From IMG/VR virus record IMGVR_UViG_3300025536_000010, positions 124,001-188,000 of that record: a stretch of DNA of 64,000 nucleotides; one strand, given 5' to 3'. Shown here in pieces: positions 572 through 17,509 of this stretch; position 1 is the stretch's first letter; every line of letters begins with the position of its first letter. A model generated the notes under the pieces. The model saw nothing but the letters and a program-made list of their open reading frames with translations. It was not told where the DNA came from and ran no database searches. The translations under genes and the position numbers were made by a program.

Positions 572-1054
572 ATGGCCACCGTCGTCGACTACGAGAACCG
601 GACTGCCGACCTGTCCGCCTTCCAGGGCGTGTTCCCGCATCTGCGTGGGCGTGAGCAGCTGCTGGCCCACGAACTGGTGCGGACCACGGACGGCGGCAGC
701 CTGGTCACCGGCGTCCTCAAGGGTGTCCAGCGCTTCCTCGTCATCCTGCTGACGCCGCGCGGCTCGAAGCTCTACCGACCCTCCGAGGGCACCTTTTTCA
801 TGACCGAGGCGCGGTTGGGGGCCTGGCGTACCCCGGCAGACGTCTCGACGGCGTTCTACGCCGCCCGCCTGCTAGCGGCCCGCCAGATGCGTGAAGTCGA
901 ACTGACCACGGACCCGCCCGACGAACGCTATGGTGTGGCGACCCTGAACGGGGTTACCCTGGTGGCCGATAAGGTGTCGATTCGCGTGGACTACGAAAGT
1001 CTGGCCGGCACCAAGGTCACCGTGATAACCCCGATTCAGGTGCCGATCAAATGA
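572..1054 (+). CDS. gp25/GPW-like baseplate wedge protein
   Basis: VQRFLVILLTPRGSKLYRPSEGT resembles the gp25 LxTxxGxRxxxPxxG motif; lies upstream of baseplate J-like gene. Confidence 0.7.
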   Translation: MATVVDYENRTADLSAFQGVFPHLRGREQLLAHELVRTTDGGSLVTGVLKGVQRFLVILLTPRGSKLYRPSEGTFFMTEARLGAWRTPADVSTAFYAARLLAARQMREVELTTDPPDERYGVATLNGVTLVADKVSIRVDYESLAGTKVTVITPIQVPIK

Positions 1055-1524
1055 TTGCGGACCTCCTGACGGACCTGTACCAGCCGGAGGCGAAGATCAT
1101 TAAACAACTGTACCAGCGCCACACGGATACCAGCGACCCAACGAAAGGTGACTGCTTTGCAACCTGCGTGGCGATGATCCTGGGTCTGCAACAAGACGAA
1201 GTACCTAACTTCTGCGGCATTGCGACGGACTGGTGGCCTGGGTTCCAGAAATGGTTAGAGGAGCGACACCTAGTCGCTATCGAGGTCAACCTGCCGCCTC
1301 CTCCCTGGAAAAACCTTGGGGCGCTGACACCAGGCGTGCCCGTCATCCTCACAGGTAAAAGCCCAAGGGGTGATTGGTTGCACTCGATTGTTGGCATGAC
1401 GCGGTGGGATGAAGGGTTTGAGATACTCTACGACCCACACCCGGCTGGTGGCGGGTTTGATGGGCCACTCAAACATGTGCTGTTCTTTGCAGCGCTCAGA
1501 CCAGACAAGGCAGGGAAGCCATGA
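1051..1524 (+). CDS. small papain-fold (C39-like) Cys-His-Asp protein
   Basis: GDCFATCVAMILG...WLHSIV...YDPHP; ATGA overlaps at both ends; visibly lower GC than flanks. Confidence 0.55.
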   Translation: MIADLLTDLYQPEAKIIKQLYQRHTDTSDPTKGDCFATCVAMILGLQQDEVPNFCGIATDWWPGFQKWLEERHLVAIEVNLPPPPWKNLGALTPGVPVILTGKSPRGDWLHSIVGMTRWDEGFEILYDPHPAGGGFDGPLKHVLFFAALRPDKAGKP

Positions 1525-3173
1525 TCGAACTCCGGCCGTTCTCGCAGCTGAATCCCGACGACGTGGCCCAGCAGCACGCTGAGGCCCTCCAGCGCGTCCA
1601 GGAGGACAACCCCAAGCTGGACCTGCGTCGAGGCGTATTCGCCGACCTCCTGATATACTACCATTCGATCCTGGCAGGCCAGGGTCAGATGAACATCAAA
1701 GACTACTGGCGGGCGCGCAGCCTCCAGGCGATGGAGGCCGACCCGGACCTGGCCACGGCCGACCCAGACCTGGTCGGCGACGTGATTTCTAACTTCAACG
1801 TCGCCCGGCAACCAGGGGCCAAAGCAACAGGCGAGGTCACCATCGTCGTTACCGACAGCATCACGGTGACCATCGGCATCGGGGCTGTTTTCGAGGCCCA
1901 GGGCCTGCGTTTCATTACCACGCGCGTCTTCACTGGCAAAACCTCCGGCCGGATCGACGACCCCGGCGACCGTTTGCTCACTCAGACGGCAGACGGTAAC
2001 TGGGCGTTCACCATCGAGGTCCAGGCCGAACAGGAAGGCGAGCAGTACCAGATCAAGAAGGACACGCTAATCGTACCGCTGGTGCTACCGCTCAACTATC
2101 GAACCTCGTTCGCCGCCAATGATTTCGAGGGCGGCTACCAGGCCGAGACGAACCAGGACTTGCTGCTGCGGCTCCAGGAAGGCGTAGCGGCGCGCGGCCT
2201 GGGCGGGCGCATCAACCAGACGGCCACGCTGCGCGCCGTCGAAGATTTCTCCAGAGTCATCGCCGTCTCCGTGGTCGGCTACGGGGACGCCGAGATGCTC
2301 CGCGACAAACACTGGGTTTTCCCGATCTCCGGCGGCGGCCGTGTCGATTGGTACGTCCGCAGCCAGGAAGAAGTGTTCCGCAAGAAACTGCTCAAAGAGG
2401 CCACGCTAATCTCCAAAACGGACAGCGGCGTCGGCACCTGGCAGGTTAGCATCGGCCGCGACGAGGCCCCTGGCTACTACGAGATCGACAACATCCGTCC
2501 CAAGGACTCCGGTAACGCAGTCGGCGGCTTCGAGATCCTGACGGACGAGCGCGTCGCCGACTTGACCGGCCCCGGGTTCGTCCCGGACGTCTTGGCGGAC
2601 AGCGACGAGTGGGTCTACACCCGCTTCCAGGCCGGTGTCGTCCAGTTCGTCGATACCGTGCAGAGCGCTGCGGCCCTGGCGCTAGGAGCCAAGCGTGAGT
2701 ACGAGCTAGAGGCCCGCTGTCTGCCTCTGGTCGCCGAGATCCAGGACACGTTCAGTACGCCGGACAGCCGACCCAAACCTTACGACTTGCTGGTCAAAGC
2801 CCCGGTGCCGTGTTTTCTCAACCTGACCTTCACTGTTTACAAGCGCTCCGGCGAGGCCGACCCGGACCTGGCAGCCATGAAAACGGCGCTATGTACGGAG
2901 GTCAACAGCGTTGGTTTCATAGGGCGGCTGTTCGCTAGCCAGCTGCACGACGTTATTCACGCTTATCTGCGGAACGACCAGACCGCTTCCGCCATCGACA
3001 TGTTTGGGCGTATCCGGTATCCTAGTGGTGAACCCGAATACGTCCGTGACAGCGAAAAACTCGAAGTACCGGACGACCCGGTAGCGCTGGTGAGTGCCAG
3101 GACGGTGCAGTTTTTCATCAGCCCCGAGGACATCAGTATCTCGGTCGAAACGTCTGTGCCGTCGAGTCTGTGA
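1521..3173 (+). CDS. baseplate J-like protein
   Basis: NFNVARQPGAKATGEVTI, VQAEQEGEQYQI, GGYQAETNQDLLLR, GGRVDWYV motifs typical of baseplate J/gp47. Confidence 0.8.
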   Translation: MIELRPFSQLNPDDVAQQHAEALQRVQEDNPKLDLRRGVFADLLIYYHSILAGQGQMNIKDYWRARSLQAMEADPDLATADPDLVGDVISNFNVARQPGAKATGEVTIVVTDSITVTIGIGAVFEAQGLRFITTRVFTGKTSGRIDDPGDRLLTQTADGNWAFTIEVQAEQEGEQYQIKKDTLIVPLVLPLNYRTSFAANDFEGGYQAETNQDLLLRLQEGVAARGLGGRINQTATLRAVEDFSRVIAVSVVGYGDAEMLRDKHWVFPISGGGRVDWYVRSQEEVFRKKLLKEATLISKTDSGVGTWQVSIGRDEAPGYYEIDNIRPKDSGNAVGGFEILTDERVADLTGPGFVPDVLADSDEWVYTRFQAGVVQFVDTVQSAAALALGAKREYELEARCLPLVAEIQDTFSTPDSRPKPYDLLVKAPVPCFLNLTFTVYKRSGEADPDLAAMKTALCTEVNSVGFIGRLFASQLHDVIHAYLRNDQTASAIDMFGRIRYPSGEPEYVRDSEKLEVPDDPVALVSARTVQFFISPEDISISVETSVPSSL

Positions 3174-3189
3174 CACAAGGAGGTGTACA

Positions 3190-4134
3190 GTGGTGGCGAT
3201 GGCCAATCGTAAAGCGGTCGACCTGCTCGTTGGACACATGAGCAAGTCGACCCGCACCATGTCTCGCACGTTCCGGGCCTACGAGCCCGATGAGCGTGTC
3301 GCCAACTTTAGCCTCTCGTACCTCGACGCTTTCGGCTATCTCAAGAACGAGCTTGAGAAGTGGAAAGACATCACCCTGGGCGACATCGTCGAAGCGGTGA
3401 AAGACTTCCAGGGCATGTTCGGCCTGCGCAAGAGCGGCCAGGTGTGCGTGAAGACCGTGCGGGCGATGGAGATGCCGCGCTGCGGCTGCCCGGATCACGT
3501 CCGCCCGTGGCAGAACTACGCGGCCGTGCGCAACTTCGCCAGGGCCAACCTGGCCAAGTGGCAGAAAGACAACCTCAAGTACGGTATCCAGGATTACCTG
3601 CCGGGGCTCTCAAAACCAGATTTTGAGAGTATCATCTACCAGTCCTTCCAGGCGTGGTGCCGCTACGGCCACGTCCAGGTCGAGCCGGTGCGGATGAACG
3701 AGCGCCCCGACATTATCATCGCAACCGGCCGTGGGCGCCAGTCGAACTTCGACGGCCCCGGCGGTACGCTGGCGTGGGCTTACTTGCCCAACGGCAACGA
3801 TCAGCAGCTGACAATGAAGTTCGACCTGGACGAGACGTGGACGCAAGACCCGACCATGCGCGGTGTTTTGCTCGACGCCGTCGCCAAGCACGAGTTCGGC
3901 CACCTGTTCGGGCTCGACCACAGTCGCGTCCAACAGGCACTCATGGCTGCCTACTACAACCCGGCGGTGCGGAACCCTCAGCAGAACGACGACATCCCTC
4001 GGTTCCAGGCCCGCTACGGCGTCAAGCAACCCGGCGACGACGGTGGCACGACCCCGCCTCCGTCTGGCAACAACCGCCGACTCATCCTTGAGGGAGTTTT
4101 CAGCGCCACGCTGGACGGTCAGAAGGTGGCGTAA
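3190..4134 (+). CDS. matrixin (M10) zinc metalloprotease with PG-binding-like prodomain and cysteine switch
   Basis: AVKDFQGMFGL, MEMPRCGCPD, FDGPGGTLAWAYLP, FDLDETW, HEFGHLFGLDHS, Met-turn ALM; SD AAGGAGG just upstream of GTG 3190 (ATG 3199 is an alternative start). Confidence 0.9.
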   Translation: MVAMANRKAVDLLVGHMSKSTRTMSRTFRAYEPDERVANFSLSYLDAFGYLKNELEKWKDITLGDIVEAVKDFQGMFGLRKSGQVCVKTVRAMEMPRCGCPDHVRPWQNYAAVRNFARANLAKWQKDNLKYGIQDYLPGLSKPDFESIIYQSFQAWCRYGHVQVEPVRMNERPDIIIATGRGRQSNFDGPGGTLAWAYLPNGNDQQLTMKFDLDETWTQDPTMRGVLLDAVAKHEFGHLFGLDHSRVQQALMAAYYNPAVRNPQQNDDIPRFQARYGVKQPGDDGGTTPPPSGNNRRLILEGVFSATLDGQKVA

Positions 4135-4145
4135 GGAGGGCCGGT

Positions 4146-5720
4146 ATGCGGCACCTCGTTCTCTTCCTGCTGCCGGTGCTAGCCAGCATTGCCCTGCTCG
4201 CACCGGCGCAGGAGGTCAGGCCCGTAACGCGCCCTGACCCTCCAGTCGAGAAACAGCCAGATCCGGCGATCGCGCGTCTCCGCGAAAGCGTCCAACCCGA
4301 GTTCCTTGAGTGGAGCCCGGACTACGTCGTGGAGCGCTGCGCCGAGTTCCTGGCCACGATCAACGAGAAAGACCGCTACCGCATTCGCCTGTTCAGCTTG
4401 GCCGACGTGCCCCGGCAGTACCTGCCGGCGGCCATCGCCGGTCTGTACTTCGGCACGAACAAAGTGGCCCGGGTGCCGTTCACCCAGGTTCCACGGCCAG
4501 TGCCGAACACGGACAACCGGATCTTCTGGGTTGACCTCTGCTGGTTCAACTGGAGCTATGAGGCGTGGGAGGCCGCGAGCGAGGAAGACCCGTACTTCCG
4601 TGAACCCATCGTCAGCAGTCACAACGAGGGCCTGAAATACCTCAAAGAACAAACGCGGGCCAACCCAGTCATCCGCGGTGACTGGTTCCTGTGGTACACC
4701 TTCGACAACACCGAGTTCCTGAAAGTCGGCGAGACGTTCAACGAGAAAGCGTTCTACTACCGCTTCCTCTACGCCAACGTCGAGTTCGAGCGCACGGTCG
4801 CCGAGAACGGCAAAACCGTCAAGAAAAAGGTGCGCGGTGTCGGCCCAGCCAACGCCCACGAGTTCCAGCAGGCATGGCTGGTCGAGTTCAGTCACCTGAA
4901 AGACTTTCCGACCGACATGGGTTTCATGGTGGACAAGCGTCGCTCGGGCGTGTCCTACGAGAACCGCATCGGTTGGCGGGTCCGCGGCAAGAACGGCAAC
5001 TACTGGCGCACCTTCGACGTGCTGCGCTCGGTCGGCGACCAGGACTTCGTGGAGACGCCCTTCCCGAAGCTGTTCGATGCCGGCGAGCACATCTTCCAGG
5101 ACGTGCGCGGCAACCAGGTTTACCACCTGACCAACGGGGCTGACAAGTCGACGGACATCGGCGACCCGCGTATCGTCCGTGACCATACCTCGGGCGCCCG
5201 CGTGCTGATGACCGCCGGGTCGTGCATCCATTGCCACGATACCGGCATCATCCCGTTCAAGAACGAACACCTGGTTCTGCAAGACATCGGCGACCAGCTG
5301 ATGGCTTACGATAAGGCCCGAGCAGATCGCTTCAAACAGTTCTATCTCCAGGACCGGCGTATGAAGCTGGCCGTGGAGGAGGACCAGCGGAACTTCACGG
5401 AGTTCATCAAGGACTGCAACGGGCTGACACCGCAAGAAAACGCCACGCAGTTCAGCCGTATCCGCGGTTGGTACATGCAGGACGTGACGCTCAAGCAGGC
5501 CGCCCGCGAACTGGGTGCGGGGATCGAAGAGTTCTCGGACGCCATTGGTTACCAGGCGACCAAGGGCCGTCTAGGCCGCCTGGTACTGGACGGGCGGGCA
5601 ATCCCGCGCTACACCTGGGAGCGCGGCGGCTTCCAGGAGGCCGGGCTGCTCTTGATTGAGTGGCGAAAAATGACGAAAATGGAACAAGATAAGCTCAAGG
5701 AAGGACGGCGTAACTACTAA
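4146..5720 (+). CDS. exported protein with a single CxxCH (putative c-type cytochrome)
   Basis: Signal peptide MRHLVLFLLPVLASIALLAPA; FDAGEHIF...GSCIHCHDTG; SD AAGGAGG. Confidence 0.75.
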   Translation: MRHLVLFLLPVLASIALLAPAQEVRPVTRPDPPVEKQPDPAIARLRESVQPEFLEWSPDYVVERCAEFLATINEKDRYRIRLFSLADVPRQYLPAAIAGLYFGTNKVARVPFTQVPRPVPNTDNRIFWVDLCWFNWSYEAWEAASEEDPYFREPIVSSHNEGLKYLKEQTRANPVIRGDWFLWYTFDNTEFLKVGETFNEKAFYYRFLYANVEFERTVAENGKTVKKKVRGVGPANAHEFQQAWLVEFSHLKDFPTDMGFMVDKRRSGVSYENRIGWRVRGKNGNYWRTFDVLRSVGDQDFVETPFPKLFDAGEHIFQDVRGNQVYHLTNGADKSTDIGDPRIVRDHTSGARVLMTAGSCIHCHDTGIIPFKNEHLVLQDIGDQLMAYDKARADRFKQFYLQDRRMKLAVEEDQRNFTEFIKDCNGLTPQENATQFSRIRGWYMQDVTLKQAARELGAGIEEFSDAIGYQATKGRLGRLVLDGRAIPRYTWERGGFQEAGLLLIEWRKMTKMEQDKLKEGRRNY

Positions 5721-5731
5721 GGAGGTCAGGG

Positions 5732-6484
5732 ATGACCGGAGCGCTCTTTCTGGCCCTGGCGCTCACGCCGGGTCAACACTGTTACTCGCCTCGGCCGGTG
5801 TACGGGTACTACAACAACTACTACCCGCAGACCTACTACCAGCCGGCGCACCAGGCGTACTACCCGCAACACCAGCCGGTCTACCCGGCCCAGAAAGTTA
5901 TCGCGCAAGATATTGCCGTGGCCCCGTTAATCGTTACGGTGCCCGTGGACTCGAAAGCGGTGCCGGTGCATGCGCACGGCTCGCCCTATTACTACTCGGC
6001 CAGCGACGCCTACCGCGAGAAGGCGTACCTCCGCGAAGTAATCCGCGAGGAACTGCGCGCCCTGGCTACCGGCAACGTGCCGCAGCAGAACACGCAGCCC
6101 GTACAACGGCAGCCGCAGCAGCAGGCGCAGCCGCCGGTCCAGCAGAACCAACCAGTCGTTGAACAGCAGCGCCTGGACGACGAGACGCCGATGGAGATCC
6201 AGACGCAAGTGCTGGCGGCCTACAACGGTACGGGCAAATGCGTCGAGTGCCACGGTGGCTCCGAGAAAGCGTCGGGGCGGCGTGGCCGCGAGTTCCGCCT
6301 GGTGCTGGACACAGAGAACGGACCACGGTTGGCATACCAACCGCCGGCCAAGCGTTGGGAGATCTACGGCATGGCCTCGGCCGGTGCAATGCCGCCGGCT
6401 GCCGCCAAAGACGCAGCCAAGGCGATGGAGACGAAGTTCCTGTCGATCATGCTCCAGTACGCCAGCTACAAGCCGCAGCAGTGA
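5732..6484 (+). CDS. exported protein with Y/Q/P-rich linker and planctomycete-type cytochrome c domain
   Basis: Hydrophobic N-terminus; KCVECHGG followed by distal AGAMPP (possible Met axial ligand); SD AAGGAGG. Confidence 0.7.
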   Translation: MTGALFLALALTPGQHCYSPRPVYGYYNNYYPQTYYQPAHQAYYPQHQPVYPAQKVIAQDIAVAPLIVTVPVDSKAVPVHAHGSPYYYSASDAYREKAYLREVIREELRALATGNVPQQNTQPVQRQPQQQAQPPVQQNQPVVEQQRLDDETPMEIQTQVLAAYNGTGKCVECHGGSEKASGRRGREFRLVLDTENGPRLAYQPPAKRWEIYGMASAGAMPPAAAKDAAKAMETKFLSIMLQYASYKPQQ

Positions 6485-6516
6485 TGGATGCAACTTACCT
6501 CGAAAGGAGTCCGGTT

Positions 6517-7194
6517 ATGAGCAAGAAGATTTTCGGACTGGGCCTGCTGATTTTCGGACTGGCAAGCCTTTGTCTCGTAAGCGACGCGGACGCCCGCGGT
6601 GTCCTCAGTCAGAGGAGCCAGCGGACCACGATTACCAGCCGCAGCAACGGTTTCCGCGACGTGCAGCGGATTCAGACGACCACGCGCAGCGGGTTCCTGG
6701 GCCTGAACCGCCGGCAGGAGAGCCTCACGATCATCAACGGCAACCGCGGCTTCCAGGAGGTACGGTTCCAGGATCGCGGCAGGCTTGGGCGCAACCGCGT
6801 CGACGAGATTCGTTTCCAGACCGGCCCGGCCTATGTAAACCAGCAGCTGCTGATCGACAACCACGCACGGCAGCGGCTTTTGCTGAATCGGCAGCACAGC
6901 TTTACGCACGCCCCCAGGAACAACGTGGCGAACATTCGCTTTATTGACCGGGGGCCAGTGTACCTGAACGCACCGCCTATTACGCGGGCGGAGATCCGGC
7001 AGGAATATGTCTACCGGCAACCAGCACAGGTAATTGAGCGGGTGGAGGTCGCTCCGCAGACTGCGGCGGACTGTGACTGCGAGCAGGTCGGTAACGCTCA
7101 GTACCAGACGGAAGCTATCGTGACGCGGCGCTACACCTACAGCCCGCAGCTGGCGCTCGAACGACGGCAGTTCATGCAGCACCACTGCCGCTAA
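6517..7194 (+). CDS. exported Arg/Gln-rich hypothetical protein
   Basis: SD AAAGGAG then MSKKIFGLGLLIFGLASLCLVSDADA signal peptide with AxA site. Confidence 0.75.
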   Translation: MSKKIFGLGLLIFGLASLCLVSDADARGVLSQRSQRTTITSRSNGFRDVQRIQTTTRSGFLGLNRRQESLTIINGNRGFQEVRFQDRGRLGRNRVDEIRFQTGPAYVNQQLLIDNHARQRLLLNRQHSFTHAPRNNVANIRFIDRGPVYLNAPPITRAEIRQEYVYRQPAQVIERVEVAPQTAADCDCEQVGNAQYQTEAIVTRRYTYSPQLALERRQFMQHHCR

Positions 7195-7229
7195 GCAAAG
7201 CGACACACGGACAACCCGGTTAAGGCCCT

Positions 7230-7265
7230 GGGGCGGGCGGGACAACCCGCCTGCCCCTTTTCTTT
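7230..7265 (+). terminator. intrinsic terminator
   Basis: GGGGCGGGCGGG-ACAA-CCCGCCTGCCCC stem followed by TTTTCTTT. Confidence 0.8.
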
Positions 7266-7276
7266 GGGAGGCACGG

Positions 7277-7645
7277 ATGCCTAAAGCGATCCCCGTGGTG
7301 GACCCCAAGGATCAGGACAAGATCAACGGCTGGGCGGTCGAGTGCCCAGCCTGCGGGAACTGCCACGTTTTCGATCTGGTACGCTGGAAGTTCAACGGCG
7401 ACGTCGAGAAGCCGACGTTCGCGCCGTCCATGTTGGTGCAGAGCGGACACTACTCGAAGTTTCACAAGCCCGGCGAAACGTGCTGGTGTGACTACAACAA
7501 AAAGAATCCCGACAACCCGGGTTTCGAGTGCAGCCGCTGCCACAGCTACCTGCGCGACGGCGTCTGGGAGTATCTGAACGACTCGACGCACGCGCTGAAA
7601 GGACAGAAGGTGCCCGCCCCGGACTGGAACTTGCCCCAACCCTAA
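7277..7645 (+). CDS. DUF6527-like Cys/His (probably Zn-binding) protein
   Basis: CPACGNCH...WKFNGDVEKPTFAPSML...CHSYLRDG...THALKGQ. Confidence 0.7.
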   Translation: MPKAIPVVDPKDQDKINGWAVECPACGNCHVFDLVRWKFNGDVEKPTFAPSMLVQSGHYSKFHKPGETCWCDYNKKNPDNPGFECSRCHSYLRDGVWEYLNDSTHALKGQKVPAPDWNLPQP

Positions 7646-7663
7646 AAAGTGGATTTTGGAACC

Positions 7664-9190
7664 ATGCCGTACAAGTTCCCCGCTTCGGACCTCGATTCCG
7701 CCCAAACGCTGCTGGCCTCGGTCGGTGGCTTCTGGAACGGCGTCTACCAGGGTTCCTTCCTGGTCGAGAGCCTGCTCTACGCCCGCGCCCGGTTAGAGGA
7801 ACAGACCCACCTCGACTTCCTGGAACTGCTGGCCTCGGTCAGCCGTTTCAAACTGCCGGTCTTCCATACGGACGTCTGGTACTTGCTGACGCTCAAAGAG
7901 AGCGAGCGGAACCAGGCCGAGGCCAACCTGGCTAAGTTCGACGGCACTTACACCTTCGAGAGCGGTATCGAGTACGACGTGCCGGTGGACACAGAGTTCC
8001 ACGTTTGGCAACTGCCCGCGGGCTTAGTGAACTTCAACCTGGCGCTCAACCGTATCACGGCTTCCAGCGTTAGCCTGGCCAAAGGCGTCGATTACTTCCT
8101 CAAAGACGGGGCCGTCTGGTTCCGCCAGAACCCCTTCGAGAACGACTTGGTCGCCAAGCGCGAGGTCTTCGAGGACGGCGTCATCACCGACCGCGAATGC
8201 GGCCTGTGGCTCTATCGCGGGCAGTGGGACTGGGACGCGGTCTACACCCAGTTCTCCTACGCGCTGGGTATGAAACTCAAGTCCTCCCAGGCTGCCAAGG
8301 ATCTCGTCAACGCGATCTTCGACGCCCTCACCCTGGGCTGCACCGACCGCTACCTCAACCGGGCCTTCTCGGCTGTCTGCGGCGTACCCTTGGCCAAGGG
8401 CGCGGAGACGGTCGAGCACACCTACACCGACCGCCGCGGCCTTTGGGTCGTAACGGACAAAAACGTCTATCGCTTCCACCAGGACGCCAACCTGCTTGTC
8501 GACGTCGGCGACGCCCTGGTCGAGGGCCAGGCGCTCACGGACGCCCTCCGCTTTTTCGAGTTCGGCCGCGGCCAGGTGCCCAGCGAGATCCGGGCGCTGT
8601 CGGTCGGCAAGGGTCTGCTAGCCGAAGGCTATTTCCAAGATCTCGTTTTCGAGAACAAAGAAGTCTCCACGGAGATCGACGAGGACCAGACCTGGACCCG
8701 CCTGACTTTCGAGGTCGGCGGTTTTCCGCTCGACGTGCAAAAGTTCTGGGACGACGTTCACCGCAAGGGCGTGGAGAGCGGACAGACCCTGGCCATGCTC
8801 CTGGACCGGCGGACCAACAAGACGGGCCAGCCCAAGGCGGCAGCGTTACCGCTGACGATCAACCCGCTGGGTTTCTTGCTCCAGAACGTGTTCCGCAACA
8901 ACCTCTTTGTGGTCCTGATCCGAGCCAACTGCCTCGGCCCTGATGCCTTGGGGCTCCAGCATGCCCGTTTCCTGCGCCGGATTCTGCCGCCGCACACCTG
9001 CTGTATCGTGCTGGCGCAGCTAGAAGCGACCGATGAGGTTACTATGGACGGACCAGGAGATGAAACAACTCCCGGTTACGAGGAAGACCTGGGCGTCTTC
9101 CTGGGACTCACCAACACCGAAGAAGTCGAAGGCCCGGACCAGATCGAAGAAGAACTGCGTGTCTTCCAGATCAACGGCCGCTGCCAATAG
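7664..9190 (+). CDS. putative baseplate/tail structural protein
   Basis: ~508-aa acidic ORF in the tail module; C-terminal LRRILPPHT resembles wedge-protein PAH-type motifs. Confidence 0.6.
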   Translation: MPYKFPASDLDSAQTLLASVGGFWNGVYQGSFLVESLLYARARLEEQTHLDFLELLASVSRFKLPVFHTDVWYLLTLKESERNQAEANLAKFDGTYTFESGIEYDVPVDTEFHVWQLPAGLVNFNLALNRITASSVSLAKGVDYFLKDGAVWFRQNPFENDLVAKREVFEDGVITDRECGLWLYRGQWDWDAVYTQFSYALGMKLKSSQAAKDLVNAIFDALTLGCTDRYLNRAFSAVCGVPLAKGAETVEHTYTDRRGLWVVTDKNVYRFHQDANLLVDVGDALVEGQALTDALRFFEFGRGQVPSEIRALSVGKGLLAEGYFQDLVFENKEVSTEIDEDQTWTRLTFEVGGFPLDVQKFWDDVHRKGVESGQTLAMLLDRRTNKTGQPKAAALPLTINPLGFLLQNVFRNNLFVVLIRANCLGPDALGLQHARFLRRILPPHTCCIVLAQLEATDEVTMDGPGDETTPGYEEDLGVFLGLTNTEEVEGPDQIEEELRVFQINGRCQ

Positions 9191-10096: not shown

Positions 10097-11932
10097 ATGT
10101 CCTTTGAACGCTTCCTCACACTGGTACAGGAGAGGGACCGGGTTAAAGCCGGGACGGTCAACAAACCGCTCCGCACCACGGACCAGAACGTCCGTTACCT
10201 GTGGGACGTCCTCCAGGCCGCCGGCATCGGCTCGACCGTCTACCTGCACCGGCAGACGGTGGAGCCCGAAGTCCACAAGGGCATGGCTGTCTGGCTCAAC
10301 CCGGACACCACGCGCTTCGAGCGCTGCCTGGCCTTCGCTGACGTCGACGGCGCCACGGGCGTCGTTTACACGGCCAACTCGGCTCAGGTCTGGGGCGTCG
10401 TCACGGAGAAGATCAACGCCACGCTGGCCGAGATCCTCTTGTTCGGCGTTGTTGACCTGAACCTGTCCGAAGCCGTTGCCGACAGCGACGACCTGGGGCC
10501 GGGCGTCTACTACCTCTCGTCCAGCCAGCCCGGCAAGCTGACGCGGCAGAAGCCACCTGTCTCGGTGGCCGTGCTGCGCGCCACCACGGACGGCAAGGTG
10601 TTCGTGATGCCGCAGTTCGTGGACTTCCTCGACCGGCACACGCACTACCGTTTCAGCTTGACCTGCGCCCCGGCTGGTGACACGACGCCGCCGGCTCCGG
10701 GCGGCACACACGCGATCACCAGCCCCAACGTCCTGACGCAAGGTTGGCTGCCGGCTGGACACAGCAGCTTCAACGGTAAAGCCCCGCCCGGAGCCGTCTT
10801 TGGCTACAACCTGGAAGCACACACGGCCCTCAAGAACCTGTGGCCGCCTCAACCGTTCAACAACGCCTACCTGGAGTTCGACCGCGGCGAAGACTCGGCC
10901 CTGGGCTTCATCGGCGTGCCGCTGGGCAGCAACGGCCTGTGCGTCGCCGACCGTTATGGCATCTGGTGGATGTCCAACTGCTACGGGGACGTGCCCTGGC
11001 CTACAGCGCTCGACACCGAAACGTCTGACAGCTACTCGGACTCTTCCGATGTGGAGTGCCCGCGGCATCTCCAGATGGCCATGCAGCTGTGGTTCACCAA
11101 GATCAATTTTGCCACCGACTTGACGTCGGTACTGTCGCTGCATTCGGGCGACAACCGCATCCGAGTCCGCTGCTACGGCAAGCCTGACCAGGTGGCCAGC
11201 ACCGGGCACCTAGAACTGTTCCTCAACCTGAACCTGGTGGTCAAGGACGACCAGCCTGGCTACCTGGCTTTCAAAGACTTCGACCCGGAGAAAGCAGAGT
11301 TCAAACGCGGCCCGGTGGTGGAAGGCTTCTACAAGCTCTCCAACAACGTCACCCTGGTCGGCACCAAAGTCGGCGAGCGCGAGATCGGTGACACCACCTA
11401 CGATCTCTACCAGGGCTTGGTCGGTATCGCTGTGGCCCCGGAAGAGACGCTCGAACTGCCGGTGCAGCTGGTACGGCTCAAAGGCGTCGAGGAAGACTTC
11501 TTCCAGGATCTGATGTATCTGGCCTTCCGCCCAGCTGTCCAGGAGGAATACCGCGCCAAGCTCGTCGTGCCGTCGGATCTAGCTATCCCCAACCCGCAGA
11601 TGAAGATCCGCATGGCGATTATGGGCCGCGCGGCCGGCACGCTGCCGGTCCTCACGGTAACGGCGCGCCGTGCCGCCAGACCCGAGGACGGCCTGGGTAC
11701 GCCGCTGTCCCTGCCGCTGACTGGCGCAGAGTTCTCGGTCACCATCGACACCCAGGGCGTACTGACCCTGGCAAACCAATACGTCGAGGCCGAGAGCGAA
11801 CCGTTTGACGTCGCGCCAGGGGATACAGTGTTTTTCACCGTCAGGCGCCTGGCCACGGACGGCTACGGAGCCGACGTGGGTATCCTGCGGCAGTCGGGCA
11901 TTTTGCTTTCAGGAGAAGACGATGAGGATTAG
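10097..11932 (+). CDS. putative tail structural protein
   Basis: 611 aa; SD AAGGAGG; GVYYLSSSQPGKLT motif seen in virion proteins. Confidence 0.65.
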   Translation: MSFERFLTLVQERDRVKAGTVNKPLRTTDQNVRYLWDVLQAAGIGSTVYLHRQTVEPEVHKGMAVWLNPDTTRFERCLAFADVDGATGVVYTANSAQVWGVVTEKINATLAEILLFGVVDLNLSEAVADSDDLGPGVYYLSSSQPGKLTRQKPPVSVAVLRATTDGKVFVMPQFVDFLDRHTHYRFSLTCAPAGDTTPPAPGGTHAITSPNVLTQGWLPAGHSSFNGKAPPGAVFGYNLEAHTALKNLWPPQPFNNAYLEFDRGEDSALGFIGVPLGSNGLCVADRYGIWWMSNCYGDVPWPTALDTETSDSYSDSSDVECPRHLQMAMQLWFTKINFATDLTSVLSLHSGDNRIRVRCYGKPDQVASTGHLELFLNLNLVVKDDQPGYLAFKDFDPEKAEFKRGPVVEGFYKLSNNVTLVGTKVGEREIGDTTYDLYQGLVGIAVAPEETLELPVQLVRLKGVEEDFFQDLMYLAFRPAVQEEYRAKLVVPSDLAIPNPQMKIRMAIMGRAAGTLPVLTVTARRAARPEDGLGTPLSLPLTGAEFSVTIDTQGVLTLANQYVEAESEPFDVAPGDTVFFTVRRLATDGYGADVGILRQSGILLSGEDDED

Positions 11933-12052: not shown

Positions 12053-12454
12053 ATGTCCTACTGGAACGGTTGGCCCCGAGAATGGGACTACAACGAGAAG
12101 CTCATCTGGCGAGCCCTCAGAGCCCTCCAGCGCTTCCCCGACAAGTGGCTAAGCGCGAGGACCGTTACCGCCCTTATGGACCCGCCCTGCCACCGGAGTC
12201 ACGGCCGCGGCTTCTGCCGGGCGCTGTACAAGATGGGCTACCTCGACCGCGACGACTGCGGCCACTATCGGGTGAACGCGCTCGGCGTACGGCACAGCCG
12301 CATGAACGACGAAGTACGCGAGTTGATGCGGCGGCGGGCTTACCGGCCCGTGCCGCTGCCGGAGGGTCTGGAGCACCTGTTCACGGACGAATCCCAGGCG
12401 CTCAGCAAGGCGCGGAAGGAGAGCACGGATGCCTCTCGGGCACTGGAACGTTGA
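12053..12454 (+). CDS. putative winged-helix protein
   Basis: WLSARTVTALM...RALYKMGYLDRDDCGHYRV pattern. Confidence 0.45.
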   Translation: MSYWNGWPREWDYNEKLIWRALRALQRFPDKWLSARTVTALMDPPCHRSHGRGFCRALYKMGYLDRDDCGHYRVNALGVRHSRMNDEVRELMRRRAYRPVPLPEGLEHLFTDESQALSKARKESTDASRALER

Positions 12455-13385
12455 ATGGCTGAACCACAACAGCCAACGAAGCTACCCCCTGGCGGATGAC
12501 GCCAGCGGCCTCGACGACAGCGGGGACTTCGAGCTTCCTGACGACTTCATCGTCGAACTGGACCTGCCGGTCCACGCCGGCATGGACGTAGACCCGGCGC
12601 GCTTCTTCATCAAACACATCGGGGCCTACTCGACCGGCTACGCTGTCATCGTCGGCTACCAACCCTCTGCCGGTGACGCTATCACAGTTGCCTCCGCCCT
12701 GATTCCGCGCCAGACGCACGCACGCAACACGGCCTACGCCCTGGGCGGCATCGAGCCCTTTGACGACACCGTGGGCAAGCTCGTCATCGGCAAGCTCGAC
12801 AACATCGACGAGCAGCCACCAGGCTACTGGAACTTCTCGCTGGAGAACGCCAGACTGGAACCCGACGCTGTCCGGCCGATCATTCGCGGTGTCTCCAGCG
12901 TCGTCTGCGTCAACGGCGACCAACGCTCGCTGCCGCTGCGTGGTGTGCTCGAACTCCAGGCCGGGCAGAACATGCAAATCATCCCGATCCTAGTGAGCGG
13001 GCAAGACCCAATCATTCGTTTCAACGCCATCGACGGCGAGGGTACAATCGACGAGTGCGTCTGCGAGGGCGACGCGGCTCCCACGGACCCGATCAAGCGC
13101 ATCAACGGCGTCGCCCCGACGCCTACCGGCGACTTCAACATCATCGGCACGGACTGCCTCCAGATCGAAGTGATCGCCAACGGTATTCGCCTGGTCGATA
13201 AATGCTCGGCCCCGTGTTGCGACTGCAAAGACCTGGAACGCATCACCCGCGACCTGGAACGCCTCAACAGTCAGGCCGCAACCGTCAACGACTTCGTCGA
13301 ACGCCTCCGAGACTCGGTCAACACGTTCGACCTGATCGTCCTCGGGTCCAAACTGGGCGACCGCGGCTGCGTCACCTGCGAATAG
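12429..13385 (+). CDS. Cys-rich tail protein, paralog 1 of 5
   Basis: EWLNHNSQRSYPL N-terminus; IKRINGVAP..GDF motif; PCCDC followed by coiled coil. Confidence 0.7.
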   Translation: MPLGHWNVEWLNHNSQRSYPLADDASGLDDSGDFELPDDFIVELDLPVHAGMDVDPARFFIKHIGAYSTGYAVIVGYQPSAGDAITVASALIPRQTHARNTAYALGGIEPFDDTVGKLVIGKLDNIDEQPPGYWNFSLENARLEPDAVRPIIRGVSSVVCVNGDQRSLPLRGVLELQAGQNMQIIPILVSGQDPIIRFNAIDGEGTIDECVCEGDAAPTDPIKRINGVAPTPTGDFNIIGTDCLQIEVIANGIRLVDKCSAPCCDCKDLERITRDLERLNSQAATVNDFVERLRDSVNTFDLIVLGSKLGDRGCVTCE

Positions 13386-13394
13386 GAGGCCAAG

Positions 13395-14948
13395 ATGTCG
13401 CACCCCTTCGGCCGCCAACCTATCGGCCCCAACCAGCCGCCCGGCGGCGGTACAAACTATCCGTTTGTTGCGCCCGAGGACGATGTGCGCCAACTCCTCG
13501 GCGACTTCTACCTGTCTTACGAGGACGACACCTGCGCCTTCGCGCTACCGCTGCGCGTCACCTGGCTCTACGGCTTCGGCGACAACGTCGTGGCTGCGCC
13601 GTCTGGTACGCCCACGCCGGTCCACGCCCAAGACCTGGTCGTCAAAGACGCTGAGGGCGTTACGGTCTTCGACTCGACCCAAGCGGTCGATTTCAAGACG
13701 ACGGTCTGGGGCGGGCGCCTGCTGGTACTGGAGTGGACCACGGAGACACAGGTCTGCCGCTGCACTGTCCACACCGCCTGGGACGCCGAGGATACGCCGC
13801 TGACCTACGACAACCACATCGTCCCGGAGAACGGCGAACTCGACGCCCGGACCTACAACCGTCTGCCCGGCCGTGTAAAAGCGTTTCGAGTCGGCCTCCA
13901 GACGATCACCGGCAACGTCCAGTTCGACGCCGGTTTCAACATGGCTATCGCCGGCAGCAGCACGCCGCGCACGGATGGCACGTTGTTCGTCGACCGCGTC
14001 GACATGGACGCCGTCCCCGGCGCCGGGCTCGGTCGCCAACCAGGCTGCGAGGAAGCCGAGGTCGTCACGCGGCTCATTAACGCAATCGGCCCCGACAAGG
14101 GCGGCAACTTCATAATCGAACTGGATGAGTGCTACCGCGGGCAGCTAGCCGCTTTCGCCCAGGATACCGAAGACGGGCGCACCGCCGAGTACGGCGCTGA
14201 CATCTACACGGACGAAGAGGCCAAAAGCGCACTGAGAATCTTCAACGACTGCCAACCGTGCTGCCCCTGCGATTACTACGTCCGCACCTACAAGGGCCTC
14301 AAGCGCGTCTGGGACAAGTGGAAAACGGCCGGCGTGGCCGCCGAAGAGGTCCGCGACCTCTACAAGGACAACGTCAACCGCTGGGAGGAACAGCGGCAAT
14401 GCCGCATTGAGCACCCGGCACGACTGGTCGTCAGCGCCGACAAGCAGTGCCGTGTGTTCGTGGGTGGCACCTACTGTAACTTCTCGAAATGCTGTCTGCG
14501 GGACATCGAGTTCCGTTTCACGTTCGAGTGGATACGCAACGGGCAAACAGAACCCGAGCCGGTCCATGACCTGCGCGTGTTCGATTCTTTTGTGAACGCC
14601 AGTTACACCGAAGGGGAGGAGCCGATCACGCCGCTGGTGACTGCCTCAACCGTCCGTTTCCTGATCGACTACGCGGACCCGCAGGCGATCACCCTGGTCA
14701 AGTTCCGGGTCTGCATCACCTGCGAGCGCGGCGACACGCTCAAGGTGTGGTTCAGTGTCCACGTCCCTGACCCTGGCCTGGACGCAGCCGGCGAGCCGTG
14801 CGAGTTGCCAGTGATAGAGATCCCGGCGCACCTGATCGAGATCTGGCTGAACGACGGGTTGCCGGAGCCCGAGCCAGCACGGGCGCTCGTAGTGAAGCTC
14901 GCACCGCTCGACCCAGTCAACCCGGTTTCCAGCTGCGTCGTTTGCTAA
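13395..14948 (+). CDS. Cys-rich tail protein, paralog 2 of 5
   Basis: TNYPFV; LINAIGPDKGGNF; CQPCCPC followed by coiled coil. Confidence 0.7.
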   Translation: MSHPFGRQPIGPNQPPGGGTNYPFVAPEDDVRQLLGDFYLSYEDDTCAFALPLRVTWLYGFGDNVVAAPSGTPTPVHAQDLVVKDAEGVTVFDSTQAVDFKTTVWGGRLLVLEWTTETQVCRCTVHTAWDAEDTPLTYDNHIVPENGELDARTYNRLPGRVKAFRVGLQTITGNVQFDAGFNMAIAGSSTPRTDGTLFVDRVDMDAVPGAGLGRQPGCEEAEVVTRLINAIGPDKGGNFIIELDECYRGQLAAFAQDTEDGRTAEYGADIYTDEEAKSALRIFNDCQPCCPCDYYVRTYKGLKRVWDKWKTAGVAAEEVRDLYKDNVNRWEEQRQCRIEHPARLVVSADKQCRVFVGGTYCNFSKCCLRDIEFRFTFEWIRNGQTEPEPVHDLRVFDSFVNASYTEGEEPITPLVTASTVRFLIDYADPQAITLVKFRVCITCERGDTLKVWFSVHVPDPGLDAAGEPCELPVIEIPAHLIEIWLNDGLPEPEPARALVVKLAPLDPVNPVSSCVVC

Positions 14949-14958
14949 GGAGGCGTCG

Positions 14959-16656: not shown

Positions 16657-17495
16657 TGGCCCAGATCCTGTTCCCAGAATGGCGCAGGCAGAACGAGCCG
16701 ACCAAGTATCCGCTGGCGGAACAGGCCACCATGACCGCCCTGGACGGTCGTGTGCTAGTCGAAGGTACGTTCCTGGACGCCGCCCTGTACCCTATCGGAG
16801 CCAAAGCCGGCGTCTACCTGGCAGCCGTCACGCTCGATCACCAGAACGCTGTCATGGAACTGGGCGACCCGTTCGACAAAGCCCTGGCCTCGGCCACCTT
16901 CTCCTTGGTTGACCCGCCGGACGAGGTCGTCTTCGTCGACCGTTACGGCAGGCCGGCAGGCGTTATCGTCAGTGAGTCGACCCGGCTGGGCATCTTTCAG
17001 TCCTGGGGCGTCGGCCGGCACGAGTTCGCTCAGGAAGGCTCCGAGTTTGCTGCCACCTGCGTTATACCCACACCAGAGGTCGGCGTGCGCGGCTTCCTCC
17101 TGGAGACGGGCGAGTTGTTCGTAGGGGACGTGTGGCTGGTAGGCAGCGACGGCGTCGTCTTGCGCACCACGAACATCTCGGTGCCGGCCAGCTGCGGGCA
17201 ACCGGAGCGCACCGTCCGAGCCATCCGCGTCGACATCGTCGGCGACCCACTATTTCGCCGCCGGCTGTGTCAGCCGAACGACCTGTTCGACACGCCACGG
17301 TTCGTACGCACGGTGCGCGTCGTCGGCCCCAACTACACCTTCGAGTGTCCGCCGGACGCCGCCGGCAACCTCATGTTGGCCGCTGGCAACGGCCTGGCGG
17401 CAGACACGGTATTGCGGATCGCTGTTACCCCCAACGGGCTCAAGATCGGCTCGGTCGGCGAGTCGCAGAGTACCGAGAACGTGAACGCCTTCTAA
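16656..17495 (+). CDS. tail protein, paralog 4 of 5
   Basis: EWRRQNEPTKYPL; PPDAAGNL. Confidence 0.7.
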   Translation: MAQILFPEWRRQNEPTKYPLAEQATMTALDGRVLVEGTFLDAALYPIGAKAGVYLAAVTLDHQNAVMELGDPFDKALASATFSLVDPPDEVVFVDRYGRPAGVIVSESTRLGIFQSWGVGRHEFAQEGSEFAATCVIPTPEVGVRGFLLETGELFVGDVWLVGSDGVVLRTTNISVPASCGQPERTVRAIRVDIVGDPLFRRRLCQPNDLFDTPRFVRTVRVVGPNYTFECPPDAAGNLMLAAGNGLAADTVLRIAVTPNGLKIGSVGESQSTENVNAF

Positions 17496-17509
17496 AAAGT
17501 GGTTTATAG

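Follow-up and report, generated by a model that had tools for sequence, protein, structure and literature searches.

A mobile protease-cytochrome gene cassette between the baseplate and tail-fibre genes of a 235-kb phage

Between its baseplate and tail-fibre genes, a 235-kb phage carries four consecutive genes coding for a latent protease of the matrixin class, two predicted exported haem-c proteins (A and B) and a positively charged, predicted secreted repeat protein (C). The window analysed here is a 64,000 bp stretch of this genome, and the coordinates of the features within it are listed in Table 1. The same set recurs in many unrelated uncultured phages, and has not been described previously.

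Table 1. Features of the cassette and its flanks; positions are those of the 64,000 bp window.
Feature	Position	Strand	Description
Baseplate J gene	1521-3173		Baseplate_J/phrog_6
Protease gene	3199-4134	+	Pro-matrixin (peptidase M10) zymogen, 311 aa from the ATG at 3199; the ORF opens at GTG 3094 but overlaps baseplate J; cysteine switch PRCG at residues 93-96 (PRCGCPD at 93-99); zinc site HEFGHLFGLDHS
Ribosome site of A	4134-4139	+	AGGAGG, 7 nt before the ATG, overlapping the stop codon of the protease gene
Gene A	4146-5720	+	524 aa, predicted exported mono-haem-c protein
Signal peptide of A	4146-4208	+	Predicted Sec signal, residues 1-21, ending LLAPA before QE
Central beta domain of A	4842-5279	+	Residues 233-378, ending in the haem motif; weak resemblance to cytochrome P460/c'-beta
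Haem-c motif of A	5223-5237	+	CIHCH, residues 360-364 (C360, C363, H364)
Ribosome site of B	5720-5725	+	AGGAGG, overlapping the stop codon of A
Gene B	5732-6484	+	250 aa, predicted exported; predicted class-I cytochrome c domain at about residues 150-250
Haem-c motif of B	6239-6253	+	CVECH, residues 170-174 (C170, C173, H174)
Distal ligand motif of B	6389-6397	+	MPP, residues 220-222 (M220, P221, P222); predicted distal methionine ligand
Ribosome site of C	6504-6509	+	AAGGAG
Gene C	6517-7194	+	225 aa from the ATG at 6517, inside the longer ORF 6238-7194
Intrinsic terminator	7230-7267	+	12-bp stem with 11 G-C pairs and a 4-nt loop (7230-7257), then TTTTCTTT
Tail-fibre gene	18513-21809		phrog_5073

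A sequence-only reading had noted genes A, B and C as a run of exported, c-type cytochrome-like proteins inside the baseplate module, with strong ribosome sites, a CxxCH in two of them and a closing terminator, and this observation is confirmed, except that only two of the three proteins are cytochrome-like. The terminator is the best of 14 candidates in 12 kb. About 0.6 CxxCH strings are expected by chance in a rough ORF set for the whole phage (about 73,000 aa), such that two adjacent copies are unlikely by chance, but the decisive evidence is their conservation in homologues, which had been set beforehand as a test of the haem assignment. The string alone proves little, as the neighbouring cytoplasmic DUF6527 protein also has two CxxCH strings as part of zinc-ribbon-like motifs, and no Pfam cytochrome model passes threshold for either A or B. 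However, it is very unlikely that the motifs of A and B are zinc or disulfide sites or chance occurrences, as both cysteines and the histidine are invariant in each protein, no other invariant Cys or His is present to complete a zinc site, export signals are present, B has an invariant distal Met-Pro, and the top fold matches, although weak, are haem proteins. A chimeric assembly or host insert is excluded by identical synteny in independent samples and by even GC content; a one-piece assembly of the sequencing run adds little, because that run may be the source sample.

The protease matches Pfam PF00413 with 103.6 bits (cut-off 24) and PG_binding_1 with 20.6 bits, and aligns to residues 7-254 of human proMMP-1 (PDB 1su3), including its PRCGVPD switch, with an E value of 1e-29. 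The PG_binding_1 match corresponds to the MMP-type prodomain and is not proof of wall binding. PRCG and HExxGHxxGLxHS are invariant in four phage copies, as is the D of the PRCGxPD switch. Unlike the matrix metalloproteinase zymogens it has no haemopexin domain, and no hydrophobic N-terminus is seen in any of eight copies, such that a secretory signal peptide is absent. Instead it carries a Pro/Thr-rich linker and a C-terminal beta-hairpin tail of about 20 aa, and this tail is shared by eight M10 copies and by the subtilisin that replaces the protease in another phage.

Gene A is the founding member of a very large family, with 57 close homologues and 4,214 clusters at 50% identity, many of them viral, for which Pfam, NCBIfam and PHROG searches returned no model. 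The cargo is therefore not rare in metagenomes, as the sequence-only reading had supposed, but it is absent from cultured phages; a search of 50,697 GenBank records gave a single hit, which is itself uncultured. The CxxCH of A is invariant in 33 of 33 aligned homologues, and exactly one copy is present in 147 of 147 distant representatives, of which 136 also have an N-terminal hydrophobic stretch. In this phage the Kyte-Doolittle hydrophobic segment spans residues 1-24, export being judged from hydrophobicity rather than from a dedicated signal-peptide predictor. An AlphaFold2 model has a pLDDT of 89.6, falling to low values at residues 19-34. The central beta domain lies between an N-terminal domain of about 180 aa and a helical C-terminal domain of about 150 aa that have no known relatives. 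In two separate structural alignment (VIA) runs the central domain placed members of the cytochrome P460/c'-beta family at ranks 1, 3, 7, 8 and 10 and at ranks 1-4 (8brk, Z 5.9; 9hrk, Z 5.4; 6hiu, Z 5.2-5.3; 2je2/2je3, 6amg and 7s5o, Z 4.2-4.3), with 100-106 aligned residues covering most of the target chains, although at only 11-16% identity and below the aligner's own caution line of 8. These are periplasmic beta-sheet haem-c proteins in which, as in A, the single CxxCH lies near the C-terminal end of the domain. There is no hit to the P460 model (PF16694) at E<=10 in 33 members, one of which hits Cytochrom_C_2 at E 0.031, and there is no invariant or nearly invariant Lys for the P460 cross-link. 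As in those proteins, no sixth haem ligand is conserved in A, implying an open, ligand-binding or catalytic haem; H315 is not conserved in the subfamily of about 425 aa, whereas E314 is. The best named language-model look-alike of the N-terminal domain is fatty-acid cis/trans isomerase (CTI, PF06934), a large periplasmic enzyme with a single CxxCH that acts on membrane lipids (score 0.65; 40 of 100 hits), but this score is far below the trust level of 0.9, there is no Pfam hit at E<=10 in any of 33 members and no Swiss-Prot fold match, and we treat it only as a lead.

Protein B consists of a Tyr/Gln/Pro-rich stretch, a conserved beta/hydrophobic segment with a nearly invariant YYY motif, an amphipathic helix, a Pro/Gln linker, and the C-terminal domain of about 100 aa, predicted to be helical. 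Among its 34 homologues, the CxxCH is invariant in 23 of 23 aligned, as are M220 and P221, with P222 nearly invariant; MPP follows the CxxCH by about 46 residues. We thus assign B as a predicted His/Met class-I cytochrome c, closest to the c553/c552 type, although its scores are all below the curated cut-offs, with 14.5 bits for PF13442 (Cytochrome_CBB3; cut-off 27) and 14.5 bits for the planctomycete PSCyt1 model PF07635 (cut-off 22), with homologues reaching 18-22 bits. The cytochrome domain is modelled with a pLDDT of 82-97, and the best two structural matches are cytochrome c domains (9qdt, Z 4.8; 5mab, Z 4.2), weak as these are, with Foldseek E values above 1; hits to the Cytochrom_C model and to c553/c552 chains are also weak. 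The N-terminal extension of 150 aa is better conserved than the cytochrome domain itself. The N-terminus of B in this phage is short and uncharged (MTGALFLALALTPG) and is a weak export signal, but the homologues have ordinary signal peptides. The proposed link to planctomycete cytochromes is only weak; the PSCyt1 score is sub-threshold, and fold relatives occur in Planctomycetota but also in Myxococcota and Pseudomonadota.

Protein C has no CxxCH and is not a cytochrome. It has a clear hydrophobic N-terminus (residues 2-26) followed by a cationic, acid-poor (K+R 15%, D+E 8%), Arg/Gln/Val-rich low-complexity sequence ending in Cys-Arg. Word-based searches found no homologues, but weak homologues are present in sister phages (E 1e-7 to 1e-11), and V/Q/R-repeat equivalents are found in six of the other contigs carrying the cassette (labelled L here), L005, L009 and L015-L018. 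Counterparts of the same composition occupy the same position in every cassette examined. The Atlas model of C has a pLDDT of only 0.41.

Comparison with these other contigs shows that the unit has four genes and includes the protease, and the linkage to the upstream metalloprotease that the sequence-only reading had thought possible is real and conserved. There is an 11-nt gap and no terminator between the protease gene and A, and the M10 gene lies directly upstream of A in the window, L002, L005, L006, L013, L015, L017 and L019, and in L016 with an insertion element between, in phages whose GC content ranges from 39 to 69%. It is replaced by a subtilisin (S8) in L003, and by a papain-like C1/phrog_16701 peptidase in L009 and L018. 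The presence of three non-homologous protease classes in the same slot argues for a functional rather than an accidental link. A and B are adjacent in all 12 or more contexts examined, and A is paired there with a protease, although L008, in which the A gene is fused, has no separate protease. In bacteria, a cytochrome c domain is fused to the A domain in one chain (as in protein P0057, and in Atlas and AlphaFold database entries with PSCyt1).

The cassette is nonetheless accessory. Four related jumbo phages that are 98-100% complete have no A homologue anywhere, and baseplate J abuts the next gene directly in one of them (L026), with only a 92-aa ORF between in another (L023). The cassette thus has the properties of moron-type or auxiliary cargo, with patchy presence at a variable slot, its own terminator, and movement between unrelated phages, and it cannot be the essential lysis system of this lineage.

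In our best reading, this is a mobile, accessory four-gene cassette that has landed in a variable slot between the baseplate J gene and the next tail gene, where it is probably read with the late structural genes, with which it is co-directional. The sequence comparisons themselves establish a latent matrixin-type protease with a cysteine switch and no export signal, a protein A with an N-terminal export signal and one invariant CxxCH in a beta domain weakly resembling P460/c'-beta with no conserved sixth ligand, a protein B with an invariant CxxCH and distal Met-Pro, and a cationic repeat protein C with an export signal; what these proteins do, including covalent haem attachment and late expression, is inferred. 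The phage carries no Ccm/Ccs genes, so host maturation is needed, and in this view the host Sec and Ccm/Ccs systems would export A and B and attach haem. B, with a low-spin His/Met haem, would then shuttle electrons between host periplasmic carriers and the open-site haem of A, the two behaving like a split two-haem oxidoreductase. A would be held at the cell wall, C would bind the anionic envelope, and the protease would reach this compartment only when the inner membrane is breached late in infection, where its cysteine switch would open in the oxidising periplasm, possibly helped by A/B chemistry, and it would degrade envelope proteins. The net effect would be a weakened or remodelled host envelope that helps release, assisting lysis rather than being the essential lysis system. 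We are confident that A and B are genuine exported haem-c proteins forming a functional pair with the protease and C, but the envelope or lysis-assist function is only a tentative reading. The proposal of the sequence-only reading, a periplasmic redox or envelope-remodelling module, is therefore partly supported, in that the conserved haem-c-type sites and the protease linkage hold but no result here shows a function.

Several features point towards the envelope. SH3_3 is fused to A in the homologues P0053 and P0054 (E 8e-8), and weakly in L017, and a PG_binding_1-like N-terminus is present on A in L008. Small proteins with a single predicted transmembrane domain lie just upstream of the protease in L003 and L005, and just upstream of the fused A gene in L008, although they hit no PHROG family, including holins. 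In the prophage L003 the cassette sits just upstream of the terminase genes, the lambda-type lysis position. The canonical phage lysis cassette (holin, endolysin, spanin) and the redox-activated SAR endolysins are similar in having a cytoplasmic degradative enzyme followed by exported envelope-acting proteins, and a position late in the operon or just upstream of the terminase genes, and non-orthologous replacement of the enzyme is typical of lysis cassettes. The phage has no match to PF00959, PF01464, PF01510 or PF13539; searches for PF00182 and PF05838 also found nothing but are uninformative, as the control genomes did not respond either. However, the proteases (M10, S8 or C1) are general protein endopeptidases with no muralytic domain, no holin, spanin or peptidoglycan-hydrolase domain is recognisable in or beside the cassette of the window, and A, B and C have neither a lipobox nor an embedded gene, as expected of a lipoprotein u-spanin or an Rz/Rz1 pair. 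Haem proteins are not known in lysis, and nothing known requires haem for it. Bacterial chromosomal relatives, some fused to Ser/Thr kinase, WD40 or DUF4384, show that the A domain also works outside any phage or lysis setting. A precedent is the Listeria phage-remnant metzincin (Mtz), which is encoded next to a small secreted TIMP-like partner, alters the cell wall and increases phage-mediated lysis (PMC8235301), although that system is Gram-positive, its protease is secreted, it has no cytochromes, and its partner family is different; the similarity is drawn at the level of the metzincin class only.

The main alternative, which we consider possible but less likely, is an auxiliary periplasmic redox or detoxification enzyme, in which A, as a P460/c'-beta-type haem protein, binds or converts NO, hydroxylamine or peroxide and B is its electron partner drawing on the host respiratory chain, keeping the infected cell productive in a nitrogen-cycling or micro-oxic subsurface habitat, with the protease and C as separate cargo that merely travel with it. 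The weak P460/c'-beta resemblance, the classical His/Met partner, the patchy distribution, the bacterial chromosomal relatives fused to cytochrome c domains and the subsurface metagenomic source are in keeping with this. It does not explain the strict co-inheritance with a protease of any of three classes and with a cationic repeat protein, nor the SH3b or PG_binding-like fusions on A; moreover, the domain sits inside a 450-aa three-domain protein unlike the 15-18 kDa P460/c' proteins, and the cross-linking Lys is lacking.

A protein-modifying system resembling MauG or a haem peroxidase is unlikely. Here A, fed by B, would oxidatively cross-link or mature the Tyr-rich N-terminal half of B, protein C, or perhaps the protease zymogen, to give a modified periplasmic matrix or an activated factor, such as a barrier against superinfection. 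The pairing of an electron-transfer haem with an open-site haem recalls how the di-haem cytochrome c peroxidases and MauG work, the Tyr-rich stretch and YYY motif of B and the hypervariable, low-complexity C could be substrates or scaffolds, and a protease sits in the same operon as in many maturation pathways. However, we find no sequence or fold similarity to MauG/CCP or haem peroxidases, and the two haems would lie on two polypeptides in the phages. The protease also lacks an export signal and so would not meet periplasmic substrates before lysis, and the late-operon position fits superinfection exclusion poorly.

More doubtful still is a counter-defence or signalling decoy, in which A would be a periplasmic sensor module interfering with a host envelope-stress or redox signalling pathway. 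This does not explain B, C or the protease, and we see no defence-system context, a view that does not rest on a search of the PADLOC library. The accessory distribution is compatible with it, and in bacterial chromosomes the A fold is found as the C-terminal part of a Ser/Thr kinase and fused to WD40 and DUF4384.

The 234,886-bp IMG/VR virus record, of which the window covers bases 124,001-188,000, is rated 100% complete by CheckV, and its GC content is an even 0.60-0.64 throughout the window, with no dip or jump at the cassette. One public run, a subsurface metagenome of 2017, contains the stretch 2000-7900 in a single contig without differences, although this may be the source sample and is therefore counted only as consistent. 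AGGAGG or AAGGAG sites lie 7 nt before each of the start codons of genes A, B and C, and those of A and B overlap the preceding stop codon. The terminator that follows gene C is the strongest of the 14 pattern matches in the first 12 kb. The sequence-only reading had reported three consecutive genes for exported cytochrome-like proteins inside the baseplate module, and this observation is confirmed with one correction, in that C carries no haem motif. Its interpretation, a periplasmic redox or envelope-remodelling module, is partly supported.

Coordinates of the cassette, its neighbours and related features in other phages
Sequence	Coordinates	Strand	Feature	Details
Window	1051-1524	+	157-aa baseplate-module protein	phrog_5845, unknown function
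Window	1521-3173	+	Baseplate J, 550 aa	PF04865 39 bits; phrog_6 'baseplate wedge' E 4e-18
Window	3094/3199-4134	+	Peptidase M10	
Window	3980-4134		Pro/Thr-rich linker and C-terminal tail of the protease	
Window	4146-5720	+	A, 524 aa	CIHCH at residues 360-364
Window	5732-6484	+	B, 250 aa	CVECH at residues 170-174; MPP at residues 220-222
Window	6517-7194	+	C, 225 aa	No CxxCH
Window	7230-7257		Terminator	12-bp stem, 11 G-C pairs, T-rich tail
Window	7277-7645	+	DUF6527 protein	phrog_3362
Window	7649-9190, 10097-11932 and onward	+	Conserved tail-module proteins	
Window	12429-18502	+	Five consecutive genes	318, 517, 565, 279 and 330 aa
Window	18513-21809	+	Tail fibre	phrog_5073 E 3e-30
Window	4179-5435	-	Antisense ORF	418 aa
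Window	5927-6493	-	Antisense ORF	188 aa
Window	6466-7308	-	Antisense ORF	280 aa
L006	5623-6342		~235-aa protein	Weak sigma-70 region 3/4 hits
L007	317-1036		~235-aa protein	Weak sigma-70 region 3/4 hits
L016	1408-2112		~235-aa protein	Weak sigma-70 region 3/4 hits
L016	5928-6953		Transposase-like gene	DUF4096 plus Sigma70_r2-like
L023	7714-7992		Junction between baseplate J and the 513-aa gene	92-aa ORF
L024	3900-7980		Junction between baseplate J and the 513-aa gene	Different ~4-kb insert
L026	7962-7992		Junction between baseplate J and the 513-aa gene	Empty
LR756511.1	478019-490711		L018, cassette locus of a 595-kb uncultured phage	
P0141 (A homologue)	residues 236-300		TIGR03000 'plancto_dom_1'	38.8 bits, just under the cut-off

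In a rough gene set for the whole phage (73,040 aa) about 0.6 CxxCH motifs are expected by chance, and the string alone does not indicate haem, as illustrated by the DUF6527 protein immediately after the terminator, which has seven Cys, including CGNCH and CSRCH in zinc-ribbon-like pairs, and no export signal. The sequence-only reading would have been refuted by a lack of conservation of the motifs in homologues, but the motifs are conserved. A word-based search finds 57 homologues of A, and in an alignment of 33 of them, down to 27% identity, C360, C363 and H364 are invariant among only 17 invariant columns. A full HMM search of 1.84 billion representatives finds 4,214 clusters at E<=1e-3 and 1,549 at E<=1e-30; all 147 listed distant representatives have exactly one CxxCH, and 136 have a hydrophobic N-terminus. 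B has 34 homologues, and with four positional equivalents from distant phages added, C170, C173, H174, M220 and P221 are invariant. Searches with PF01578 and PF05140 show that the phage encodes no CcmC/F/CcsA or ResB-type maturation protein, so haem attachment would depend on the host. Non-haem motifs, or an assembly artefact, are effectively excluded, and a role for A-C as virion components is rejected because Sec signals and periplasmic haem attachment do not fit cytoplasmic virion assembly.

No Pfam, NCBIfam or PHROG model matches A or any of 33 relatives, even at E<=10, and a search of PDB sequences with the A profile returned nothing. The AlphaFold2 model is confident (pLDDT 89.6, pTM 0.85) and predicts a signal peptide, a disordered stretch (19-34), an alpha/beta N-terminal domain (about 50-230), a beta-sheet domain (about 233-378) ending at the CxxCH helix, and a helical C-terminal domain. 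Foldseek gave no significant match to this model in PDB, BFVD or AFDB Swiss-Prot, but in AFDB fold clusters it matches, at TM 0.66-0.70 and E 1e-21 to 1e-26, a set of unnamed or 'cytochrome c domain-containing' proteins of 430-1,180 aa, one of which is the C-terminal part of a Ser/Thr kinase. The ESM Atlas shows the same fold in viral clusters and in bacterial clusters fused to PSCyt1, WD40 or DUF4384 (Planctomycetota, Myxococcota, Pseudomonadota). A further Atlas resemblance, to fatty-acid cis/trans isomerase (CTI), is not backed by any HMM or fold result and is kept only as a lead.

The one link between A and solved structures comes from VIA-align, in which residues 233-378 match cytochrome c'-beta and cytochrome P460 (8brk, Z 5.9; 6hiu, Z 5.2-5.3; 9hrk, Z 5.4; 2je2/2je3, 6amg and 7s5o, Z 4.2-4.3). 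These are the top ranks in both an independent wide search and a second look, and cover 100-106 residues of 135-160-residue proteins, but the Z values are below the aligner's own caution line and we regard this as a resemblance rather than membership. The resemblance fits the sequence, in that the CxxCH lies at the C-terminal end of the beta domain as in that family and no second axial ligand is conserved; H315 of the GEHI motif is lost in the ~425-aa subfamily while E314 is kept. This points to an open-site haem of the ligand-binding or catalytic kind, although there is no invariant Lys for a P460-type cross-link.

The C-terminal 100 residues of B are modelled confidently, and their best structural matches are cytochrome c domains (YhjA, Z 4.8; FoxE, Z 4.2). 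Sequence profiles touch c553, c552 and CcoP only weakly, and Pfam PSCyt1 and Cytochrome_CBB3 stay below threshold, but with the invariant CxxCH...MP we read this as a divergent class-I His/Met cytochrome c. The N-terminal half of B is unusual and better conserved than the cytochrome domain, and consists of a Cys just after the signal peptide, a Tyr/Gln/Pro-rich stretch, a hydrophobic beta-like segment (…VAPLIVTVPV…), a YYY motif, an amphipathic helix and a Pro/Gln linker. C has a predicted signal peptide followed by an acid-poor, Arg/Gln/Val-rich sequence. A word-based search with C finds only itself, and its relatives were found only through synteny and local phmmer: sister phages have weak homologues (E 1e-7 to 1e-11), and every other cassette examined has, in the same place, a secreted cationic protein built of V-V-Q-R-like repeats, with D+E of 0-8%. 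The Atlas model of C is unstructured, and the Atlas gave nothing usable for it.

The protease gene upstream of A belongs to the same unit. Its product aligns over 250 residues to full-length human proMMP-1 (1su3; E 1e-29), including the cysteine switch PRCGxPD and the zinc site, and PRCG and HExxGHxxGLxHS are invariant in four phage copies; the weak 'PG_binding_1' hit is therefore the MMP-type prodomain. None of eight matrixin copies (those in the window and in the phage contigs L002, L005, L006, L013, L015, L016 and L017) has a signal peptide, and all eight end in a Pro/Thr-rich linker followed by a ~20-residue beta-hairpin tail with the pattern h-x-h-x-x-x-G-x-h-x-x-h-x-h-x-G.... The non-homologous subtilisin that replaces the matrixin in prophage L003 has a similar tail, which may be a docking tag for A, B or C. 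A second possible protease is the 157-aa protein encoded just upstream of baseplate J, which has a motif (GDCFATCVAMILG) resembling the catalytic-Cys region of C39/papain-like peptidases.

The order protease-A-B-C occurs in the sister jumbo phages L002, L006/L007, L010/L011, L012/L013 and L016, and also among nucleotide-metabolism or unknown genes in the unrelated low-GC phage contigs L005, L015 and L017 (GC 0.39-0.40). In L016 a transposase-like gene is inserted between the matrixin gene and gene A, and splits the cassette without removing it. In prophage L003/L004 a subtilisin (S8, 213 bits) replaces the matrixin, and the cassette lies just upstream of the small and large terminase genes. 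In the huge phage L009 and in the 595-kb uncultured phage LR756511.1 (L018), a papain-like peptidase (PF00112; phrog_16701) and a 150-aa protein precede A-B-C; LR756511.1 is the only GenBank phage record with an A homologue, and tblastn reports two matching places in it, of which the one listed was examined. In the L008 locus A itself carries a PG_binding_1-like N-terminus, and in the A proteins P0053/P0054, and weakly in L017, A carries a C-terminal SH3b domain. Single-TMD proteins with charged tails lie just upstream of the protease in L003 and L005, and just upstream of the fused A gene in L008, but a PHROG search with them gave no hits, including to holins. A bacterial relative (P0057) has a PSCyt1/CBB3-type cytochrome c domain fused in front of the A domain; this parallels the A and B pair, but in a profile comparison only the haem motif aligns to B, and the fusion is an analogy rather than proven orthology. 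Two scans of a bacterial genome collection (with an alignment, A5, and with the single protein P0055) returned no relatives, and single-protein viral scans with P0146, P0214, P0055 and the 513-aa protein encoded downstream of the cassette also found nothing.

An alignment of this 513-aa protein was used to collect further relatives of the phage, among which four genomes of 219-224.5 kb, 98-100% complete and two with terminal repeats, contain no A homologue anywhere. In L026 baseplate J abuts the 513-aa gene directly, in L023 only a small ORF lies between them, and in L024 the position is occupied by an insert encoding other secreted-looking proteins, with a signal-peptide-bearing 300-aa protein and 225-, 393- and 143-aa proteins that have no Pfam match. 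The junction after baseplate J is thus a cargo slot in this jumbo-phage lineage, and the cassette, which has its own terminator and an ameliorated GC content, is an accessory element and one of the alternative fillings. A rival explanation, that A and B constitute a periplasmic NO, hydroxylamine or peroxide enzyme of the auxiliary-gene type, would account for the haems and the patchy distribution but not for the protease, C or the wall-binding fusions; we consider it the main rival, but unlikely.

We hold with high confidence that A and B are two exported haem-c proteins forming a functional pair, an electron-shuttling His/Met cytochrome and an open-site haem protein, linked to a latent protease that would stay in the cytoplasm and to a cationic secreted protein. 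The conservation of the motifs, the linkage of the genes and their accessory distribution are shown by sequence comparison, whereas covalent haem attachment, electron transfer and any action on the envelope are inferred. Our best reading, offered only tentatively, is that the cassette is envelope-directed and assists lysis. This rests on the interchangeable protease classes, the wall-binding domains sometimes fused to A, the late or pre-terminase positions, the precedent of a Listeria metzincin (PMC8235301), and a compartment logic in which the protease can only meet A, B and C after membrane breach. It also rests on the absence from this phage of four common endolysin families (PF00959, PF01464, PF01510, PF13539), the only PG_binding_1-like hit being the protease itself; searches for PF00182 and PF05838 (GH19, GH108) were likewise negative but are uninformative, as their control genomes did not respond either. 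Against such a role, the cassette is dispensable in sister phages, it has no muralytic, holin or spanin signature, and haem has no known role in lysis. A MauG/peroxidase-like protein-modifying role is doubtful, and a signalling or counter-defence role is more doubtful still.

An unlikely but more far-reaching possibility is that phages carry a previously unrecognised class of envelope-attack system in which haem chemistry is part of the mechanism. In one form the periplasmic A/B pair would sense the collapse of host respiration and act as a redox timer; in another it would generate an oxidant that opens the cysteine switch of the latent matrixin-type protease, or directly damages wall or membrane components, and in either form it would work together with the cationic repeat protein. 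The same A domain would then be an uncharacterised haem sensor or enzyme module used widely by Planctomycetota, Myxococcota and Pseudomonadota.

The component classes (c-type cytochromes, matrixin) are each known, but A defines a very large, uncharacterised haem-c protein family (over 4,000 clusters at 50% identity) with no Pfam or NCBIfam model, no solved structure and no studied member, for which the cassette provides a clear genomic handle. The association of a protease of any of three classes with A, cytochrome B and a cationic repeat protein is robust across phages of very different GC content, including 180-600-kb jumbo and huge phages, and was found in no paper in our literature searches and in no cultured phage. 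If the cassette acts on the envelope, it would add redox chemistry to the ways in which phages breach or remodel diderm envelopes and would supply new protease and haem tools; if it is a detoxifying enzyme, it would be a new type of phage auxiliary gene for nitrogen-oxide or peroxide stress in subsurface communities.

Indications of a planctomycete host are indirect, and include the sub-threshold PSCyt1 hits, the presence of Planctomycetota among the fold relatives, and a DUF1570 gene, of a family typical of planctomycetes, beside prophage L003. The inserted TIGR03000 domain in the A homologue P0141 likewise hints at planctomycete hosts for part of the family. However, carriers span GC 0.39-0.70, so the cassette is not confined to one host group.

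Among the other genes of the region, we note that the ~235-aa protein with weak sigma-70 region 3/4 hits lies three genes upstream of baseplate J in sister phages and may be a phage late sigma factor controlling this module; the equivalent gene lies across the left edge of the window. The five consecutive genes preceding the tail fibre gene start with a similar N-terminal motif (…N..N….YP(L/V).(D/E)(D/Q)A(S/T)…) and look like paralogous tail-fibre or baseplate adaptors, although none hits a PHROG family. The long antisense ORFs that overlap genes A-C are taken as by-products of the high GC content, as the conserved homologues and all of the synteny lie on the + strand.
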